Assembly (NCBI GenBank): GCA_038496445.1
Contig: JALMLS010000562.1
Span: 62,001-126,000, forward strand
From: Trichosphaerium sp. ATCC 40318
Taxonomy: Eukaryota > Protista > Tubulinea
DNA: 64,000 nucleotides
Direction: 5' to 3'
The first letter of the stretch is position 1, and each line of letters starts with the position of its first letter. Below are positions 1,961 through 57,369 of the stretch, piece after piece. The notes beneath the pieces were generated by a model, which saw nothing but the letters and a program-made list of their open reading frames with translations, did no database searches and was not told where the DNA came from. Made by a program: the position numbers and the translations under genes.

Positions 1961-2924
1961 ATGGATCCCAGTGGCTGTTACCCAAATCCGTACTCGGTAT
2001 GTACATAATTGTAAATTTGCTCTAAAACTCTTTAAACCTCTGTATTTTATCTTAATTGCTGTAGAGAGGACCACCTCCTCAATATCCACCGCCTGCGTAC
2101 CTGCAAGGACGCGTAAACCCTGGTGCACTCCCTCCGCTTGGTCCACAAGTAGTACCTGCTCCAAAGCCTGCAAAAAGAAAGGGAGGCAAATCTCAAGTCG
2201 TTTTAGGCCCAGACGTACGTCTCTACACTTTTCTTTGCCAAAGCGTTATTTCATTATTTTATTCACCAAAAACAGATACCGTGACTAAATTTCGCGTCCA
2301 GTAATTGTATTAACGAATAATTTAGGGTAAACCTGAAAAAAAATATTACCGCAAAGGAGGTGAAGATAAATGGGAGGATTCATCTCTTTCCGAATGGCCA
2401 GAAGGTATGTTTAAACAATCAACCACATTTGCAGCGAAACAGATTTGTTTATGTAGTGTAGCTGACACTTTGGTAAAATATTAAAATTATTTACTAACTG
2501 GTACTGTGCAGATGATTTCAGGATTTTTGTTGGTGATCTTGGTAACGATTGTACAAATTCCATGTTATACGAAGCATTTGAAAAGTATAAGTCTCTTGCA
2601 AAAGCCAAAGTCGTGCGAGACAAGCTCACACGCAAAACAAAAGGCTATGGCTTTGTAAGTTTCTTGGATCCGCATGATTTTGTAAAAGCGCTCAGAGAAA
2701 TGAATGGTGCGTTACTCAAAAAGCCTTCAATTCGAGATTAGAATTGTACTTGAAAACTCATTTTATGCATTGTAGGTAAATATATTGGCGCCAGACCATG
2801 CAAATTACGCAAGAGCCGATGGCAAGAACGCACAGATAGTACCAGAGTAACAAAGTATAACAAATGGGCGAAACGAACAGCTAGACGCTCCACAAAACAA
2901 AAGAAACATAAACCTTTATTCTAA
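1961..2924 (+). CDS. RBM42: RRM protein RBM42 (tri-snRNP associated), 5 exons
   Basis: WEDSSLSEWPEDDFRIFVGDLGND...KTKGYGFVSFLDP...ALREMNGKYIGARPCKLRKSRW after removing 4 GT-AG introns. Confidence 0.9.
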
Positions 2925-3155
2925 GTTGCTTATTAAAAAAAAAAGCGGCCACGTGACTGTAATAAAGCTTGTACAGTAAAGATATTCTTCTCGAAATTTT
3001 GACACTTACTTTACGCTCAAGGGGCATTCTAGCTGTGTAAGTGCATTAAACTGCAAAACAATGTTTGTAGTGTTCTGTCCGACTCGTTCAAGCACGCATT
3101 AAGCAGCAACACGTTCACTAATAAGTCACTTTTAAGCAAACATTTTACAATCACC

Positions 3156-3470
3156 ATGGAAGAGCGTGTCAAAGCTGCTGAGCGCACTATTGTCGAACAA
3201 AACGAACAAATCAGGCAATTGGAGGATATGGTTGCAAAATTGTCGCATTATGAGTTACCAGCGGTTCAAGTAGCGCCTGCCAACAATGAAGTACGTATTT
3301 ATGGCAAAATACCGCTTATTAGATTTCAGAATGAGGAAAAGCTCAAAGAGCAAATACAGAAGCAAAAGAGGAGAATAAAGCACTTAATACGCTCATTAGA
3401 GGTAATTTTTTTATTCCACACTTTAATAACAATAATATAGGCTGAGGAAGCTAAAAACCAAGGCAAATAA
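3156..3470 (+). CDS. Small two-helix coiled-coil protein resembling the N-terminal leucine-zipper extension of arginyl-tRNA synthetase, 3 exons
   Basis: MEERVKAAERTIVEQNEQIRQLEDMVAKL...EEKLKEQIQKQKRRIKHLIRSLEAEEAKNQGK*; introns start at 3291 and about 3402. Confidence 0.6.
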
Positions 3471-3723
3471 GTAAATTGTAGCGTTAAAAACATCTTTAAA
3501 CACTCTTTTTGGTCTTGTGATTAAAGTGGACTAATGTTCGACCGTTAACAATTGTCAGTCTTGTTTTATTGCGCTAGGCGCATGTCAATTTAATTGCCTG
3601 TACCATTACCTGTCAAATGTCAGAAATAACATGAGCTTTTGACAGACAAAGTCATGCGAAGATTTACATTGCCAAAAACTTAAAAAGCAAAAAAAAGGCA
3701 GTACTCGCACCAACTAAAACCCC

Positions 3724-9354: not shown

Positions 9355-12347
9355 ATGTCGAAACAGGGCCAGGTGCACATCGTAGTACAGAGAGCCAACG
9401 GCGCATTCGGCAAAAACACGGGTACGGCCCCAAATTTTCCCGTATATTATCTAAATGATGCCCAAAGAGCGTCTTAAGTACTGTATAATATCTGTTGGTG
9501 CTCCTGATCAAAAAAAATCTAAAAAAAAGGCTAACCTAAGCACACAGCAAAGAAAACAACCTAGAGCACGTATTTAAACTGTATAAAATAACACTAACAT
9601 GTTTTTGGTAGTGGAACGAGTCCTTCTATATTTATGCGGTTGACAGACGCCAACCTATATTCATTCAACTGATGGCGGCCCACACGCTCGATCTCGTATC
9701 CAGAAAAGACCACCTCGTTGGAGCAGCAATAATTGATACATCAAGACTCCCTTCTAACAAAACTAAGTCCCTCACACTAAAACTTCGCGTAAGCAACACC
9801 ATTTGTTACCCCTTTTTGAATTTTTTTTTTTTTCACGTGGGTGTACACTATGTACTAACATACTTTTCCCAAAGGACAATAAACGTGGCGGTGAGTTACT
9901 TGTAAAAGTGAAATATACGCCATGGAAACTGGATATCCCGTCATCTGTAAATTTTACACCCCAAGTGCCACTGTGGTCAGTATTCACTACGGGTAACTGT
10001 TACACTGTTGGCAAGGTATTGGAAATTCATTTCTAGCTATAAAATAGTTACTAACCTGTCAAAATAGCCTATCACTGGTTACATCGCATTTCATTGTTTC
10101 AAACCTATAAAGATATCAGGTGTTGGAGGTACTTCCCTTATTTATTGGAGGGTTGTGTTTAATTTTTATTTTAGTTCATTGGCTTGGCTGCAGCCTAGAT
10201 AAAACTCGTGTACCGACCCACTATCATTTAAACACAAGGTTTCTACTTTACAACCCTGGGGACACAAAAGTTGTACGTACAATGAACAAGATTAACAAAA
10301 AAACTCTCAAAACCCATAAAACGAAGAGAAAAACAAAAAGTAACCTCTGACAATTGTTTTAGTGTGGATTAGATGTAGGCACATATATCTGGCCTTTCAG
10401 CTTCACAATACCGCATACAATGCCTCCAACCTCTTCTACTATTGCTTATAGATGTAAAATATTCGTTCAAGTTGCAGGCAAAAATCCTGTTGAGATCAAG
10501 TCTAGCGTACAAATTAATCTCACTTAATCCTTAAACTAATGTCAATCTTTAGACGTTTTTGAAAGTGCTAGGTGCTCCTCCATCCGCTCAGTTCGATACA
10601 AGTGGTGCACTAGCTGTACCAGCTGCTCAAGGGCGACAACTAGCCCAAGCAAGACTTTCTTCAGGTCCTAGGCAATCATCTCCTAAGCGTGTAAACTCCA
10701 CTCCAAGTAAATCACCTACTCGTGGAATGCCGCTAGCAAATAAAAATCCACTTTCTATTTCAGTGGATCATTGTACGACATGATTGTTTTTTAATCGAAT
10801 TATTTGAGCTGACAAGTTTGTTAGTTGATGCTAGCTTCATTATAGACCCATCTGAACTTGAACTTGGTCATGTAATAGGTCAAGGAGGTTACGCTTCTGT
10901 TTATCAGGCTTCTTGGCGTGGAACAGGTATTTTTGGAATTTTTGTTCAACCACTAAAGAGGTGTTGTTTTCTTACGCAGTTCTTGCTTAGATGTGGCTGT
11001 AAAAAAGCTCGTATTTCAAAACGCTATGAACGATATTGTCCGTAAGGATTTTATAAATGAAGTGTCTTTAGTTCAAAAGTACGTAGTGTTGAAAGAAAGA
11101 GGCCGAGGACCTCTTTATTTTCTTACATAAAATTATGATCAAATTCTCATATTTTAAAAAAAAGGCTTCGGCATCCAAATATAGTTCAATTGTTGGGCGT
11201 TAGCGTCGTTGGCAATGAAGCTTGGATTGTTATGGAGTGGATGGTAAAAGGCTCTCTATACAACATATATACCTCACCTAATTACGTACGTTTAACTATC
11301 GAACTAAACAAGATTTTTGGGTTTTTTATCTGACAAGTTTATAAATAGGTGGAATGGGCTACAATGCTTGCCTATCTTATTGATGTTGCAAAAGGAATGT
11401 GTTATTTACATGGAAACAAGCCACCTGTTATACATAGGGATTTAAAGTCTGTTAATTTGTTGGTGGATGACGGTAACAGAGTAAAGGTAAGGTTTTGGTT
11501 TAAAACAGAGGTCAAAGAGCGTTTGTTGATTAGTATGTGGTAGATTACCGATTTTGGGATTAGCAAGAGCGTTACTCAGAAAAATATGCTTACTGCACAG
11601 CGTGGAACCTACCATTGGATGGCCCCAGAGGTATTTAATGGGAGTGGTACGTCATTGTTTATAGTCTTTGTTCCTAATGGATTTATTTAGCATACACACT
11701 AAAAGCCGACGTGTTTTCTTTTGCAATAGTATCGTGGGAGCTACTCAACAGATCGGTACAATATAATAAAACTAAACGCGAATACTCACGCCTCAATTTA
11801 GCTTCCGTATCTTGGTATGGAACCAATCACAGTTGTTAATCAAGTATCTAATGGTTTGAGGCCACCAAGGAATTCATGGGTAAGAGAAGCCTCATTCTCT
11901 TACAATGAACATCAGTTGTTAACTTACTATTCTTTTAGCTACCTCCTGACATGCAAAACCTAATGGAAGAGTGTTGGGCTCATGATCCAGCGGACAGACC
12001 ATCATTTCTTGCTATCTTGAAGAGATTACTTGCTCTGGAACCTACAGCGCACTACTTTAGACCGCCACTTCCAGGGAGTGAACCCTTTTCAAAGGTGCCT
12101 TCACCTATAGACACACCACCAAAAGGGCCACCAAAAGTACCGCCAAGGGTAAGATACAAACCTTTTCTAATTGCTCGGCACATCCCTTACTCACAACCAT
12201 CATTAGAAGCTTGTTAAAGTTTCTCAGATAATCTCCACTGGCGATATTGCAACTGAGGAACCAGAACCTCCGCCAAAGCCACAGCCTCAACATAAGAATC
12301 ACAAGAAATTACAAAGGAAAAAAGGTATAAAGCGCCTTTCAAATTAG
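9355..12347 (+). CDS. C2 domain + arrestin-N-like domain + tyrosine-kinase-like (TKL) protein kinase
   Basis: C2: [11 protein letters not shown]. Arrestin-like: [18 protein letters not shown]. Kinase: [33 protein letters not shown]. Pro-rich tail. Confidence 0.85.
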
Positions 12348-35448: not shown

Positions 35449-37547
35449 TTATTTTCCGTCTTCTTCAATGACAACAGGGTGGCCTTCAGACTTTAATGTT
35501 TCAATTCTATACAATGAGTGTTCTTCCAAGTATGGGTTATGTTCAAATATAAAATCGTGGTAATGCAACTCATCTTTATCACTTGCTCTTCTTAGCCCTC
35601 TACCAACCTTTTGAATTAGCAAACTTGCTTCTTTTCCGCCTAATACGTAAATCAACCTACACAGCCACTTTCTCTAAAGAATAACGTACCACAGGCATTG
35701 ACGAGGTGATGAACGTAAACGTTGATACCAAGGAAACCAATAGGACTTTTTCAGGTTAGTTGTAAACAAGAAAACACTCAAAAAAAACAAACAAGAGGTC
35801 TCGCCAGCGCACCTGATGATAGCAACAACTTTTTTCTTGTCTGTTTCACGCAGTTGGGAAAATACATAATCCCTAGTTTCCGCACTATCTTCTCCCTTTA
35901 CCCAGTATGCGTCTGGGATTAAAGCTTGTAGTGCATCACCATGAGCTATCCTAAACAAAATAAGTGAGCTATTTTTACTCAATAACGCCATAGCGCCTTA
36001 CCTCTTTACAAGCACAAGAATACGTCCTAGTAAAAAACCACAGTAAGTATAATATATTCCAATATTCATTAGATATAAAACATGCACATACCCTCTGGAA
36101 CGGCATTTACAATTGCAGCCACTTTTTCATGAAATGGTTCATTTTGAACAATCCCGAACTCTTCAGCTTCTATCCAAGGCAAGTACTTTGGTATTACTAC
36201 ATAAATACATTAAGAACAAAATGAGAATACTAAGACAATTTTGCCTTCACAAGTAATACGTACTAGAGCAATCAATTTTATAAAAATGAGCTGTACTTTC
36301 TGAAAGCACCTTGACACTTTTAAGCTCAAATGTCGATATATCACAAAGCTCTGGTCCAAGCCAACTCTTCACTTGCCAATTATGTAAAGGATCATCAGCT
36401 TTCCATGGTGTAGCTGAAAATCCAAGTCTGTAAAACACTCAGGAAACAAAAATAGAAAATGATCAAAACTTACCTAATAGAAGCATTTTTAAACATTTTC
36501 ATCCATTTCGCTGATTCTTTAGAAGCAAATTGATGAACCTCATCAACAATTAGCACCTATACATTTACTATAAATACGACATTACACGCGAAGGTATGTC
36601 ACTGACTTGTGTATTTTTAATAAGTTCTTTGCTGAGTTTATGCAACGACTGGATTGTTGAACACGTGATCAATGTTGGGTTAAAGTGTTTACCACCTACG
36701 CTAGAACATATTAACATCTCCTTACTTCATAATGCGTATAGTTACCGTCCAATATTTTGAATACCAGCCTTTTCAAACACCTCAAAAGTTTGATCAAGCA
36801 GTGAAATACTACGCGTTAGAACAACTGTTTGGTATTGGTTTTTAAGAGCCTTCAAGATTGCGGTAAACATAAGCGTCTTACCACCGCCTACAAAGAAAAC
36901 GATAAGGCGTTAACTACACTTCACCTCGCTTACCTGTAGCGCATTTTATTATTCCTCTACGCTCTTGGAGTGCAAGATTTGCTACTTGGACTTGGTAATC
37001 CCTGAGCGTTAATGGATTCTCTTTGGTTGAGAGTATATCTGGCGTTACAACATCAGGCTGGCAGGGTTTCGTGTTAGCATTTTGCACAACGTTAAGTTTC
37101 TTTCTACCTCTGGATACGTGCCCTTGAACCCGCGTTCATCTTGTTCTTCCCAGTCGACGTTATTGCTTATCAACTGCGACCGTTAGAAACGTTATTTGTT
37201 CAGACGACTTTTTCGATGTCTAATGCTTGAAAACGCGATTATTAAACGTACAAACGTTTTTACATCAGCTATTAGGCCTGTTGGAAACCGTCCAGATTTT
37301 GAGTCGAAAACATTGACAAAACCCGCCCAGCGATAGTGAGGGAGTTTATTCACCTGTACTGTACCGCCTTCAACTTTCTTTTTCAACGCATAAAACTTTG
37401 GGTGAACGTAGCTGCAAAAACTAAGCATGACAGCGCATTTCACGTTAAATGTACGCGCCTAAAGTGGTGTTGGAGGCCTCTGCGTAACTTTGTATCCTCC
37501 GTCAAGACATGAGAGTGTATGTTCCTCAAACGAAGCACTATAGACAT
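35449..37547 (-). CDS. Superfamily-2 DExH helicase of the phage/prokaryotic UvsW/SSL2-like type, intron-rich
   Basis: GRFPTGL, LRDYQ, CATGGGKT, IVDEVH, GFSATP, QKVGRGLR, HDFIFEHNPYLEEHSLYR. Confidence 0.85.
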
Positions 37548-51725: not shown

Positions 51726-51984
51726 CATTGGCTGTCGTTGCCCACTCGGTAGTTGCAAGCGTAAATGTACAGAAGTAGAGCGACAAAAAATAAATACCGC
51801 CTTGGCACATTTGAGAACAGCGAAAAAAACCAAGTATCACTGAATTGTAAAAAAAGTTGTATTTAACACCTATAACGTGTTTGAGCTGGTCTACTTGAGC
51901 GCTCAGGCCTTTCTTAAGAATGTAATTAAGTTACACTAAGTCATTTCCGAAACATTTGCGATATCATAATTCAGGAAAGCTAAA

Positions 51985-54900
51985 ATGCAAGAGACCACAA
52001 CCTTCTTCCCTGAGTCGCTTGAAGACGCCGACCTGAAAACAGAGGATTTCTTCTCGCAGCCACCGCAGCACCCTGAATATTTAAATTACGTACAGCATAC
52101 AGATATTACAACAGATACATCACAAATGCCTGGATTACCCACAGTTCCACAACTCGACCCAAATAACCAATGGTACCGATATTATATGGAAGAAAAACAA
52201 CAGCGGGAGAAAATGCAGCAAACAATGGCTGGTCTAGAAACATTATTGTACGCTAACGCCAAAAATTTCGTTTCCGACGCCAACGCCTATTACAATAATA
52301 TAGTTAACCATCAAATAAAACTAAATAAATATTTAGACAACGTTACCAAGGCGAACTTTCGCGATTACAGACGCTACCAATGCCTGGACTAATGCAAGAT
52401 TTATCTAAACCTCAAATGTACTAGCTTTTAACTCAAGTATACAATTCTGCTGACACCGCATTTTCAGTTTACCGAACGACAGTTTGTTAGAAATCATAGA
52501 CGATGAAGAATATCCCTTCTGTAGATACATGGTATGCTTGCTATACACAAAAAACCTGAATATTTACGAAAAAACGTTAGGTAACGGAGGGTACTGTAAG
52601 ACCTTTCCCTGTTCTCACAGTCAATCTCAAAGAGAATCTAAAGAGTGTTTTAATCAAAGCCGAGCCAGCAGCAAACTACAAGTGAGTTTTAGTTGATTTT
52701 TAGACAAAACTGAAATCCCGGTGACTAACTTTTTTTGTAGATTCAAAGTAGAGAACCACATTGCTTTTTATAAAGCTAAAGACCAAAAGGTTATCACCCA
52801 CAAGAAGGTACATGCTTTCGCAAATATTTGCGTAGGTTTCCGCCGCTAACGCCCTCAAAAGGTTGGTAATGTAATCATTTTCGACGATTTGCGTATCTCT
52901 GGTGTTGGTACAGCCGATGGAGACATTATTCAGATTGAATTCAAACTGTACAGCATTGATGGTCCTAACTCTACGCTCCTTGCCACCAAAACATCCCCAA
53001 ATATTCAAGTATACAACCACTCACAGTATTTCCCTGGTATGCTTTCTTTTCTCCCTACATCTATCTAATTTGTACCTACTAGCACCTTGTATTACAAAAC
53101 TACTTCCAAACTGGGCTACAGTAGGTGAGAGACGTAAAATAGACGTATTTGGGCCATTGTTTTTGAAGAAGAAAATTTTGGAGTGTCAATTTCTTGAAGA
53201 AACAGGAAAGCAATTCTCCCTCCTAAGGTATGACGGTCTAACAATTAATCCGAATCTTACTTACCTTATAACCTTAGAAAAGCAGAGATCCAACGTAAAA
53301 GAAACTGCTTTCACAGCTTTTCCTTCACAGCTCCAGATCACCCTCAAGGACGTGTTTTCCTTCGCTCTCGTTACGTAAACAGAGATTTTGGTACTGGCAA
53401 ACCTTTCTTCTACCTTGGTACGACACAGGCTTCCTTGTCTTTTTTGTTGTTCCTTCCACTCTAACATTATCTCTAGTACCACCTACCAGCGGTAAATTAC
53501 CTCGTGAACGCGTAATTACAAGCGGCGAGTTCCGTAAAAACGCGGACGGCGGTTTTACACACCATTCATCATTCAGACCTCTCAATGAGAGCAGTGGTAC
53601 TGATTCGCTTGGTTTCTTCCAAGTTTTGGGAGATTCATACGATGGTAACTACCAATCCCTTAGTGTACGTCAAAGCTATTGTTTAATGTGAGGAATAAGT
53701 GCTTACTGTTATTAGAAACTCATGAAAAACGCAGTTGCTCGCGAATGCGTTAATAAAAGAGATGTGAATGGATGTACAGCCTTGTTCTGGGCTTGCTACC
53801 GTGGACACGAAAAATGTGCCAAACTTTTGTTAGTTTGCAAAGCGAACCCAAACTGTGCTAGTTCCCGAGGTCAAACTCCACTACACGCAGCTACGCTAAG
53901 CAAGTCTGATAAGATCGTAAAAGAGCTTCTTAAATACCACGCCAAACCCGAAGCAGCTGACCACGAAGGTTGTACTGCTTTACATCTTGCTTGTGCAACT
54001 GGTGCCACAAAGTGTGCCAATATTTTGATGAAACAAATGGAGGATCTAGATATGATCGATAATGATAAAATGACACCATTGCACTACGCTGCAATGACAC
54101 AAAGCGAAGGTACGCTAGAACGACTCTTGGCTTTCTTTTTTTTTTTCGGAAATTTTGAAGACTTACTCTCTTGCTTAGAAACCTTTTTATCTATTGCCGA
54201 AGAATCCGCTGCAAGAGGAGAGGAACTCGATATGGTTGATAGCAACGGTCTTACACCTTTGCATTGGGCCAGTGCTTCTGGAAGCAGTCGAGTAGTCGAG
54301 TTTTTATGCAAGCAACCTGAAGTCAACATAAATGCTGTCAACTTCGACAAACAATCTGCTCTATTCTTTGCTGTTCAAGCAGGTGAAGAGAAGATTGTTC
54401 GTACTCTATTAGAATACAAAGCAAATCCAAACCTTTGCGATACTTTGAAGGAAACACCTCTATTCACTGCAGTCCGCGAGGGGAACGATAATATTGTCGG
54501 CATGCTCATGGACAACAAGGCTGATATGTCAGTTACAAATGTTTTCGGTCTTAACCCTATGGAAGCAGCTGAGAAGAAAGCAGTAACTGCTCCTGTTCAA
54601 AAGAAGAAGCCTGTTGTACAAGAATTTAAAACAAGTAAGAAATCCGAGGAATCTCCACGAAGTGGCAAGTATGAAGTTACAACCGGTCCTGTTCTTCTAC
54701 GCGATACAGATGATAGTCCAATCGATGAAGAGACTCTAGAGTTCATTGAAGGTCAACTACAACCTCAAACAGGCAACGCTGATATGGCTCCACATAAGAA
54801 GGGTACGCACAAACTCTTGGGTTTTTTTAAGTTGTTTGTCGATCTGTTTTCTTACTTTTTTCTTTTAGAAGTCATGAACAAACAAAGTTCTATGGTTGTC

Positions 54901-55092
54901 AAATATTTGAAGAGGCTTGAGTCTAGATTCAATGAAGAACAAGCTGCAAATAAGAAGAATAAAGAAAGAATTGGTCGCCAAGATATGGTCATTGATGAGC
55001 AAAAGAGGCAGATTAAGATATTAGAAGCACGTATGAGCGATTTGACGAATAGCATTGCTGTACTCAGAGCTCATATTGGATTAAAATCTTAA
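51985..55092 (+). CDS. Single gene: acidic/Q-rich N-terminus + Rel/velvet-like Ig-fold domain + IPT/TIG + ankyrin repeats + C-terminal coiled coil
   Basis: Exons splice in phase: LEIIDD..RYMVTEG..RPFPVLTV..VIIFDDLRI..IEFKL..SPNIQVYN; APCITKLLP..IDVFGPLF..FTAPDHPQG..PFFY; multiple TPLHxA ankyrin repeats. Confidence 0.8.
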
Positions 55093-55400
55093 AGAGCTTT
55101 TAAAACAACCAACAACAACAATTTGTTCATTATTAACCCCTCCTTGTATTCTTACTTGTATTTTACAATTTTTTGCACTACCCTGTATAAAATGTACATT
55201 AACCCTCTACACCTGTTCACTTTTTTTTTTTGTTGCGAAACCAAGCGCTATGTGCTACTGCCCAAATTGAGAAAGTTATATTTATTACACAAGCTATTTG
55301 TACAGTTTTTTTATTTGTTTTTTTTTTTTTACCAACTTAGGAAAACGAAAATGTGATGTACTTTCACCTACCTCCAAAAGAGAAGACTTCGCGTTTTTTG

Positions 55401-57369
55401 CTAGTACGAATTTTCGTTATGTCCTTCGTCTGAATAAGAACGAGAATTATCTTCATCATAGCTATCAACGTAATTACCCTCTGGAGAGTAATCATAGTTA
55501 TCACTGTCATCAGAATCTGATGACCTGTAGTAATCATCATTAAAAAAATCCGGTGGAACTTCTTGCATTTGCACAGAAGGCGCAGTCTAAGACAATAATT
55601 AGCACGTGAGTGTAAGCAAGCAAAAAAAGAGGAACCAGTCGTGGCACGTACGGATAAGCGCTTTATGTTCTCCAAAATAGAGTTACGTAATTGATCTAAG
55701 TACTGTTTGTGATTCTGGTTCTCTATTGGTGGATATTTAGCTTTTCCATTTAATAAGAAATCTGGGCCATAGAATTCATAATATGATGACTTCTTTGGTA
55801 TTTCATTTGGCACAGGTGTATTTAATATGACAGATGTTTCATTTACCCTAAGCATTTATGTCAACTCAAAAAATTTCACAAGGAAATGAAGACAAAGAAA
55901 AATGGCAACCACTTTAAAGGTGGATGTAGCGTACCAACATCGTGCAACGTTACGTATTGTATAACCTCCACCTCCAAGAACAAGTAGAGGTTTTCCCAAT
56001 CCCTTCACAAACTCAACACAATCGGCATGACCCTACGAAACAGTTAAGAAAATCGAAATGTACCAAGATTAAGTTGTGCTTTTTGTTAAACGACAAGGAT
56101 TGAACTTACTTTCAGAGTTAAATTAAAATTACCAATCCTATCATCTCTGAGCGAATCAGCACCACATTGTAAGACAATTGCTTCTGGTTTATAACACTGC
56201 ATAATAGCTTCAATTGTAGGCTTGAATAAGCACATGTAACTACGATCATCAATACCTAAACCATTAGTAAACACCCCACAGCTATCCAATTATATGGTGA
56301 AATTTACGCACCATCTTTCAGCGGTACATTAACAGAATAATACTTTCCTCTCAAAGTACCAACTTCGGTTGCATCTCCTTAAACTTTAATTTAGAAAACC
56401 GCCCCTTACAAAAACAACAAAATAATGTTGCCATCCCACACCTGTGCCTGGAAAGAACCCGTTGCCATATTTATGAAAACTAACAGTGAGTACTCTATCA
56501 GTTAAATAAAAAGCGTCTTGGACCTACACAAAACAATTAAAAAGAAACCCACCAGAAACGGTTGCTGCAGCAAAACTTCACTGTCCAAAAAAAAAAAAAA
56601 AAGCTTCATAAAAATATTATCACGTGCCCCATCTCCATGGTGAATATCTATATCGATATACAACACCCGAGGGTGATATTTAAGAAGTTCTTGTATACCA
56701 AGTACAATATCATTAACATAGCAAAATCCTGAAGCCTCATCTTTGCGAGCATGATGAAGACCTCCAGCCCAATTGATAGCCACATCACAATGACTGTTAT
56801 AAAACCCGTTAATTTAGTTTGCTTGTGGCGGTAAGTACCCATGATTTAACATCTGAGCGCCGTCTACAGAGCCTCCAGCGTATAATTGACAGAACTTGTA
56901 GAGTCCTGGGAATCCTGACGTTTTTTGTTAACGTTAGAAGATTGTAATTGCTTAGTTTACCTGGACAGTCCATGAACACGTTAGCAGACCGATTTTCTGA
57001 TGTTTTTGGTGTCAACCTTTATGTTGCAAGGTTAAGAAGTTAAATTATAGGCACTAAGTTGCTGTAAAGTACCTTTTAAGATACTGTACGTATTCTGGGG
57101 TGTGGAATTTCGCTAAATCTTCGTCTGTTGCTCTTCTTGGTTTAAACATATCCATTTTCTCGTGGAGACCGTAGGTGAGTATGAGATCATGCGTTAGAGA
57201 AAGTCTGTGTGGCTATACCAATATAAGGAACTACTACTGAAGCAAACTACGTCGCACGTACTTTCATAGGGTGTCCTTCGCCGTAGTGGAAATTACCGAC
57301 CTCATTGTCATGAAAATACACTATCCTCTTTTTACTTGGTGGTCGCCTGTTCGTAGAGTCTGTGGTCAT
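55401..57369 (-). CDS. HDAC3: Class I histone deacetylase, HDAC3/Hos2-like
   Basis: [81 protein letters not shown]. Confidence 0.9.

Follow-up and report, generated by a model that had tools for sequence, protein, structure and literature searches.

An expressed Trichosphaerium protein with a predicted velvet/Runt/Rel-class head, an IPT-type domain and ankyrin repeats in the order of NF-kB p100/p105

A 64,000-nucleotide (nt) stretch of the genome of the marine amoeba Trichosphaerium sp. ATCC 40318 (GenBank assembly GCA_038496445.1, contig JALMLS010000562.1, positions 62,001–126,000 of the forward strand), hereafter the window, contains a gene at positions 51,985–55,092 that encodes a protein of 821 amino acids (aa). 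An initial annotation, made from the sequence alone, described the product as a Rel-like transcription factor with the layout of NF-kB p100/p105. It was found that a layout consisting of a Rel/velvet-like domain, an IPT domain and ankyrin repeats is real at the level of predicted folds. We regard the protein as either analogous or very distantly related to NF-kB p100/p105. Membership in the Rel family could not be demonstrated, because no profile match was obtained, the recognition loop is imperfect and the domain that should carry this loop is mostly acidic.

The peptides on which the initial annotation was based come from open reading frames that look separate, and it was suggested that they are spliced into one protein. 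Three-frame translation of positions 51,900–55,200 showed that these peptides alternate between frames, with short GT..AG introns between them, and all of them are present in one open frame of the joined model. The 11 introns are 46–89 nt long and all of the GT..AG type, nine of them starting with GTA[CT]G or GTGAG, and an in-frame TAA codon is located five codons 5' of the ATG. When public runs were aligned to positions 51,800–55,300, all 11 splice joints were present in spliced contigs of four runs from three studies; a single 2602-nt contig (run X5) spans 51,968–55,207 with all 11 joints, and contigs of the runs X1, X2 and X3 agree with it. In addition, a search of protein sequences in which the long ankyrin open reading frame was the query retrieved P0001 (741 aa), a protein of the Trichosphaerium sp. 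ATCC 40318 transcriptome MMETSP0405, which is identical to residues 81–821 of the model; P0001 begins at Met81 because the MMETSP-like contig begins at 52,066. Since all joints are found in spliced contigs and P0001 is identical to the model, the ankyrin part belongs to the same gene and is not a separate one. This confirms one expressed gene that gives rise to one mRNA with a complete frame of 821 aa. The queries of the database, fold and profile searches described below were single exons or P0001, residues 1–80 being covered as exon 1 only; the joined 821-aa model served to obtain the translation and the amino-acid composition, to look for motifs and to make a local tblastn comparison with the locus of a paralog.

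The N-terminal domain, or head (about 135 aa), was modeled alone with AlphaFold2 using a 12-sequence alignment, with a predicted local distance difference test score (pLDDT) of 87.1 and a predicted template modeling score (pTM) of 0.84. All of the 12 best structural neighbours of the model are DNA-binding domains and are separated from generic sandwiches, namely the velvet domains of VosA (score 10.9) and VeA (10.1), the Runt domain of RUNX1 (three entries, 8.9–9.8), RelA/c-Rel (9.0), p52 (8.9), p65 (8.8), TonEBP (8.4), STAT1 (8.4), p65 from the entry 2o61 (8.1) and Dictyostelium STAT (8.0). Lower scores were obtained for generic sandwiches (from 7.4), RBPJ (7.3), p53 (6.9) and MYRF (6.5). Foldseek agreed on velvet, STAT and Runt, with no Rel-homology domain (RHD) among the top 50 matches, and the ESM-Atlas shape search put a velvet cluster first (TM-score 0.72) and LAG1 next (0.65). 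Velvet ranks first in three structure searches with the head, and its gap of about 1 Z unit to Runt is a tie; the identity of the head to VosA is 12–16%. Velvet's own structural neighbours were reported to be Rel, Runt and STAT (PMC10845976), which is the same set as that of the head. An Atlas feature search with the head alone gave a weak pointer (0.81) to PF28397 DG1062_N, an unconfirmed lead. These models support the assignment of the head to the p53-like/Rel/velvet class of DNA-binding immunoglobulin (Ig) folds; taken alone, its predicted structure is nearest to velvet and Runt, above the N-terminal Rel-homology domain (RHD-N). The β-rich, Rel/velvet-like domain that had been expected before the IPT domain is therefore borne out by fold only, as a predicted velvet/Runt/Rel/STAT-class sandwich. 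Of the two findings that the initial annotation had named as refuting it, a pre-IPT domain lacking a p53-like Ig fold and a separate gene for the ankyrin part, neither was obtained.

An IPT-type domain is located directly C-terminal to the head, as in the Rel layout. Its predicted structure corresponds to the IPT/TIG fold, and the annotation as such likewise rests on fold. The best neighbours were the IPT domains of EBF3 (score 11.7, root-mean-square deviation 1.7) and EBF1 (11.3), CAMTA1 TIG (11.1), the RelB/p52 dimerisation domain (10.8), NFAT1 RHR-C (10.6) and p65 (10.4); the scores for EBF, CAMTA and Rel tie, and no single subtype stands out. Modeling of the head together with the IPT domain on a 15-sequence alignment (pLDDT 85.9, pTM 0.75) led to a structure for which all of the top 25 Foldseek matches in the PDB were Rel-homology regions covering both domains. 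These included p50 (E 4.4e-8), NFAT1, RelA, p52 and TonEBP, while generic two-Ig proteins appeared at about 3e-6. VIA comparison of the two-domain model gave ties between EBF1 (10.9), p65 (10.8), TonEBP (10.8) and p52 (10.5) over 195–209 residues. Protein-language-model features also pointed to RHD clusters as the closest (0.87, with 171 features in common), a result to be taken as no more than a lead.

The other parts of the protein were characterized at the sequence level (Table 1). The run of ankyrin repeats noted in the initial annotation was confirmed by Pfam, which found seven stretches in P0001 above the curated cut-off (Ank 3.9e-43, 143 bits; Ank_2 2.3e-45, 153 bits), and the block is conserved across the family of related proteins described below. 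The N-terminal 115 residues are acidic, as had been stated, resembling an activation region; no Pfam match was found in them, and the region is conserved in the paralog. The Gly/Ser linker was recovered in part: in P0001 267–330 (64 residues, overlapping the start of the ankyrin block) it is moderately rich in these residues (G 12%, S+T 22%), and strongly Gly-rich linkers (20–22% G) are present in the relatives P0125 and P0136; that of P0124 is Gly-rich as well. Linkers of low complexity are common. The terminal coiled coil was found as a zipper-like heptad pattern: in seven family members, L, I, V or M fill 0.50–0.75 of the a/d positions of the final 56 residues, and the segment can be aligned throughout the family. 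Taken as a whole, the 141-residue tail at the C-terminus (P0001 601–741, coiled coil included) has an isoelectric point (pI) of 9.2 and 19% K+R. The initial annotation also noted the lack of a transmembrane segment and of CG-1 and IQ motifs, and none was detected. The highest 19-residue Kyte–Doolittle mean is 1.02 and falls inside an ankyrin helix, a pattern check of the 821-aa model revealed no IQ motif, and the Pfam scan of P0001 gave no CG-1, COE1_DBD, HLH or death domain.

Table 1. Features of the gene and its product (positions in the window)
Feature	Positions	Strand	Details
mRNA (transcribed region)	51968–55207	+	2602-nt spliced contig, run X5
Coding sequence	51985–55092	+	12 exons; 2466 nt; 821 aa; ATG 51985; TAA stop 55090–55092
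Exons 1–6	51985–52247, 52337–52417, 52468–52531, 52581–52681, 52741–52807, 52862–53036	+	
Exons 7–12	53083–53227, 53278–53417, 53477–53664, 53716–54109, 54179–54802, 54869–55092	+	
Introns 1–6	52248–52336, 52418–52467, 52532–52580, 52682–52740, 52808–52861, 53037–53082	+	
Introns 7–11	53228–53277, 53418–53476, 53665–53715, 54110–54178, 54803–54868	+	
Acidic N-terminal region	51985–52468	+	aa 1–115; pI 4.5; D+E 15%; short helical/heptad stretch precedes the fold
Head, predicted velvet/Runt/Rel/STAT-class Ig-fold β-sandwich	52469–53084	+	aa 116–251; P0001 36–171; exons 3–7
Predicted IPT/TIG-fold domain, basic	53033–53478	+	aa 250–346
Low-complexity Gly/Ser/Thr-rich linker	53479–53622	+	aa 347–394
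Ankyrin block, seven repeats and conserved pre-ankyrin helix	53623–54600	+	aa 395–680; Pfam
Lys-rich low-complexity tail	54601–54801	+	aa 681–747; no domain match
C-terminal coiled coil/leucine-zipper-like heptads	54802–55089	+	aa 748–821

When 1.84 billion protein representatives were scanned exhaustively with HMMER using the head (P0001:25–270) as the query, no more than 15 clusters were found; two further close relatives came from a word-indexed search. All sufficiently long members, including P0121–P0129 and the Cavostelium protein P0136, consist of the head, an IPT-like domain, a linker and ankyrin repeats; the C-terminal heptad segment is found in every full-length member except P0136. 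Among the sources, only Trichosphaerium and Cavostelium apophysatum (P0136) carry an organism name, and both belong to Amoebozoa; the other sequences come from metagenomes or Logan contigs. Judging by these searches, the proteins form a small sequence-orphan family whose two named members are amoebozoan. A profile search of the 70-Mb Trichosphaerium genome found this gene and one paralog only. The paralog (contig C133, positions 35,518–37,185; 2019–3685 of the extracted locus L011) shows about 55–70% identity in the head and includes the head, the IPT domain, the linker and at least four ankyrin repeats; downstream of it no match was found to the last repeats, the tail or the zipper of the gene analyzed here. 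P0136 (1114 aa) contains an SH2 domain at residues ~1007–1081, after the ankyrin block (28.2 bits; cut-off 21), and the combination of an Ig-fold head with SH2 recalls the STATs. Another member, an intronless 753-aa protein, is encoded at positions 10,001–12,262 of a 192-kb contig (JGI 3300073880). The neighbouring genes of this contig, among them XPO4 in pieces and a PurK/AIRC fusion, look eukaryotic and appear to be split by introns, and it can therefore be assumed that an unsampled relative has a family gene without introns.

In its most likely function, in which we have about even confidence, the protein would act as a dimeric regulator of transcription that is kept latent. DNA would be contacted by the Ig-fold head and the basic IPT domain, the IPT domain and/or the zipper would mediate dimerisation, the acidic N-terminus would activate transcription, and the ankyrin block would restrain the head or dock partners. 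A block that restrains the head would in turn require signal-dependent release or processing. The protein would then work like NF-kB p100/p105; by analogy with that layout, IkB-like self-inhibition and processing may be suggested.

A number of results weigh against such a regulator. The structures are predictions based on shallow alignments of 12–15 sequences. The first 346 residues gave no Pfam match even at E ≤ 10 (P0001 and exons singly), the exon-by-exon scan detecting ankyrin only, with the remaining exons too short to score. No Pfam match to RHD, velvet, Runt, STAT, TIG, CG-1 or COE was found at E ≤ 10 in 15 family members, and a comparison with PDB sequences revealed nothing meaningful for P0001:1–340 or for the family profile. 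Hidden Markov model scans of the genome gave 33 TIG matches elsewhere and none in this gene; the scans for RHD (PF00554) and Velvet (PF11754) gave no match, but no positive control gave a signal in them either, so their outcome does not show that such domains are absent. In seven of nine members the head is acidic (pI 5.1–5.9), the same seven in which the IPT domain is basic (pI 8.9–10.1), and a conserved run of D/E precedes the would-be Rel recognition loop. Finally, a classical nuclear localization signal was looked for in the protein and was not found.

The acidity of the domain in most members, the conserved D/E run beside the putative recognition loop and the missing localization signal would also fit a non-DNA-binding scaffold or signaling adaptor, in which the head, the IPT domain and the ankyrins are protein-interaction modules, the zipper oligomerises and the likeness to transcription factors is a matter of fold reuse. 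The SH2 domain of the Cavostelium member, which exceeds the Pfam cut-off, points in the same direction, namely to phosphotyrosine signaling. Arguments against a scaffold are that the 12 best neighbours of the head are without exception DNA-binding domains standing apart from generic sandwiches, and that the head-plus-IPT pair matches solved transcription factors (Rel, NFAT, EBF) best. The acidic N-terminus and the basic IPT domain fit an activator, and SH2 also occurs in the STAT transcription factors. We consider the scaffold less probable than a latent transcription regulator, but its main rival.

NF-kB p100/p105 consists of a Rel-homology region, a Gly-rich region, seven ankyrin repeats and a death domain. 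The amoeba protein combines in the same order, in one polypeptide, a predicted s-type Ig domain of the DNA-binding class, an IPT-type domain, a low-complexity Gly/Ser linker and seven ankyrin repeats, and to this extent the parallel drawn in the initial annotation holds. A true, extremely divergent p100/p105 homologue, with RHD-N, RHD-C, the Gly-rich region and the ankyrin repeats shared by descent with holozoan NF-kB, would agree with the 25 best Foldseek matches of the two-domain model, all of them Rel-homology regions, the proximity of RHD clusters by language-model features, the number of repeats, the Gly-rich linkers of P0125, P0136 and P0124 and a loose F-x-R-Y-..-E-G loop. Nevertheless, this homology is very unlikely. 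The amoeba protein has no sequence or profile similarity to NF-kB p100/p105, no RHD profile matches any member, and the head taken alone places velvet and Runt above Rel, with no RHD in the Foldseek top 50. The head is also acidic and shorter, about 135 aa compared with about 180 aa for RHD-N; the IPT domain resembles EBF and CAMTA no less than Rel; and a C-terminal zipper occupies the position of the death domain, which is absent. The Rel recognition loop is R-x-R-Y-x-C-E-G, whereas the family loop, P-F-[CP]-[RK]-[YF]-x-V-x-E-[GS], contains only one basic residue, is longer by one residue between Y and E and comes after the acidic run; P0129 and P0136, which are the two most distant members of the family, have lost it. 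The resemblance to the RY-x-CEG motif named in the initial annotation is thus a loose one, and membership in the Rel family was not supported, given the absence of RHD matches in Pfam and of profile matches in the PDB and a head nearer to velvet and Runt. In addition, NF-kB has so far been reported from holozoans only (PMC6040629), and the present protein is amoebozoan.

As for a divergent non-fungal velvet-domain protein with acquired IPT, ankyrin and zipper modules, complete velvet domains have been described in non-fungal organisms such as Capsaspora (PMC10845976), and the domain is compact, as velvet is, but this origin is just as improbable, as PF11754 is unmatched in every member at E ≤ 10 (and in the genome scan lacking a positive control), Runt ties with velvet and the identity to VosA is only 12–16%.

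A comparison with other known systems showed partial likeness in each case. The velvet proteins VosA, VelB and VeA share with the amoeba head the structural neighbours Rel, Runt and STAT (PMC10845976), and differ in the profile that the amoeba family fails to match. In the survey of velvet proteins no addition of IPT or ankyrin to velvet is described, the word 'ankyrin' having 0 occurrences in it (PMC10845976). According to two further sources, dimerisation in these proteins is mediated by the velvet domain itself (10.1101/2025.02.27.640524; PMC12614781). CAMTA proteins (CG-1, TIG, ankyrin and IQ) likewise have a DNA-binding head followed by TIG and ankyrin; the amoeba protein lacks CG-1 and IQ and has seven ankyrin repeats. 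CAMTA proteins have two or three such repeats. Spt23/Mga2 (IPT, ankyrin and a membrane anchor, processed by the proteasome) resemble it in the order of IPT and ankyrin and presumably in being latent factors, but the amoeba protein has seven repeats and no hydrophobic segment, a zipper replacing the transmembrane anchor. EBF/COE (a zinc-knuckle Ig-fold DNA-binding domain, IPT and HLH) also combine an Ig-fold head with IPT; EBF has no ankyrin repeats and the amoeba protein no COE1_DBD or HLH match. CAMTA, Spt23/Mga2 and EBF were rejected as the family of this protein, their defining parts being absent.

Next to the gene, a convergent gene of a class-I-type histone deacetylase is located on the opposite strand at window positions 55,364–56,300 (Pfam Hist_deacetyl 1.3e-10, one exon), and the 3' ends of the two genes are about 150 nt apart. 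Low-depth contigs of the runs X2 and X3 contain single-base differences at positions 52,065, 52,646, 52,948, 53,544, 53,547, 53,607, 53,769, 53,808, 53,830 and 54,636, the change T>C at 54,636 being present in both runs. These runs carry the same organism label and belong to other studies, and the differences probably represent variation between strains or alleles.

Factors of the Rel-homology type are considered an innovation of holozoans (PMC6040629) and velvet factors as essentially fungal (PMC10845976), and the two are linked by fold only. Here, an expressed amoebozoan family was found whose head is predicted to be velvet-like when alone and Rel-homology-like together with the IPT domain, and which carries seven ankyrin repeats as p105 does. 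It provides a concrete protein for asking whether this class of regulators predates Opisthokonta, and whether a DNA-binding head with an ankyrin inhibitor in cis is a recurrent solution. Transcription-factor censuses based on profiles miss such families entirely. A broader and, in our opinion, unlikely reading is that these proteins represent an amoebozoan branch that has survived from an ancient, Amorphea-wide class of regulators of the Rel/velvet type, in which a velvet-like DNA-binding sandwich is joined to an IPT domain for dimerisation and to an ankyrin block acting as an internal IkB-like inhibitor. In that case, a self-inhibited precursor of the p105 type would either be older than the divergence of Amoebozoa and Opisthokonta, forming a bridge between the velvet of fungi and the Rel of holozoans, or have arisen twice, and the SH2 domain of Cavostelium would add STAT-like phosphotyrosine control.

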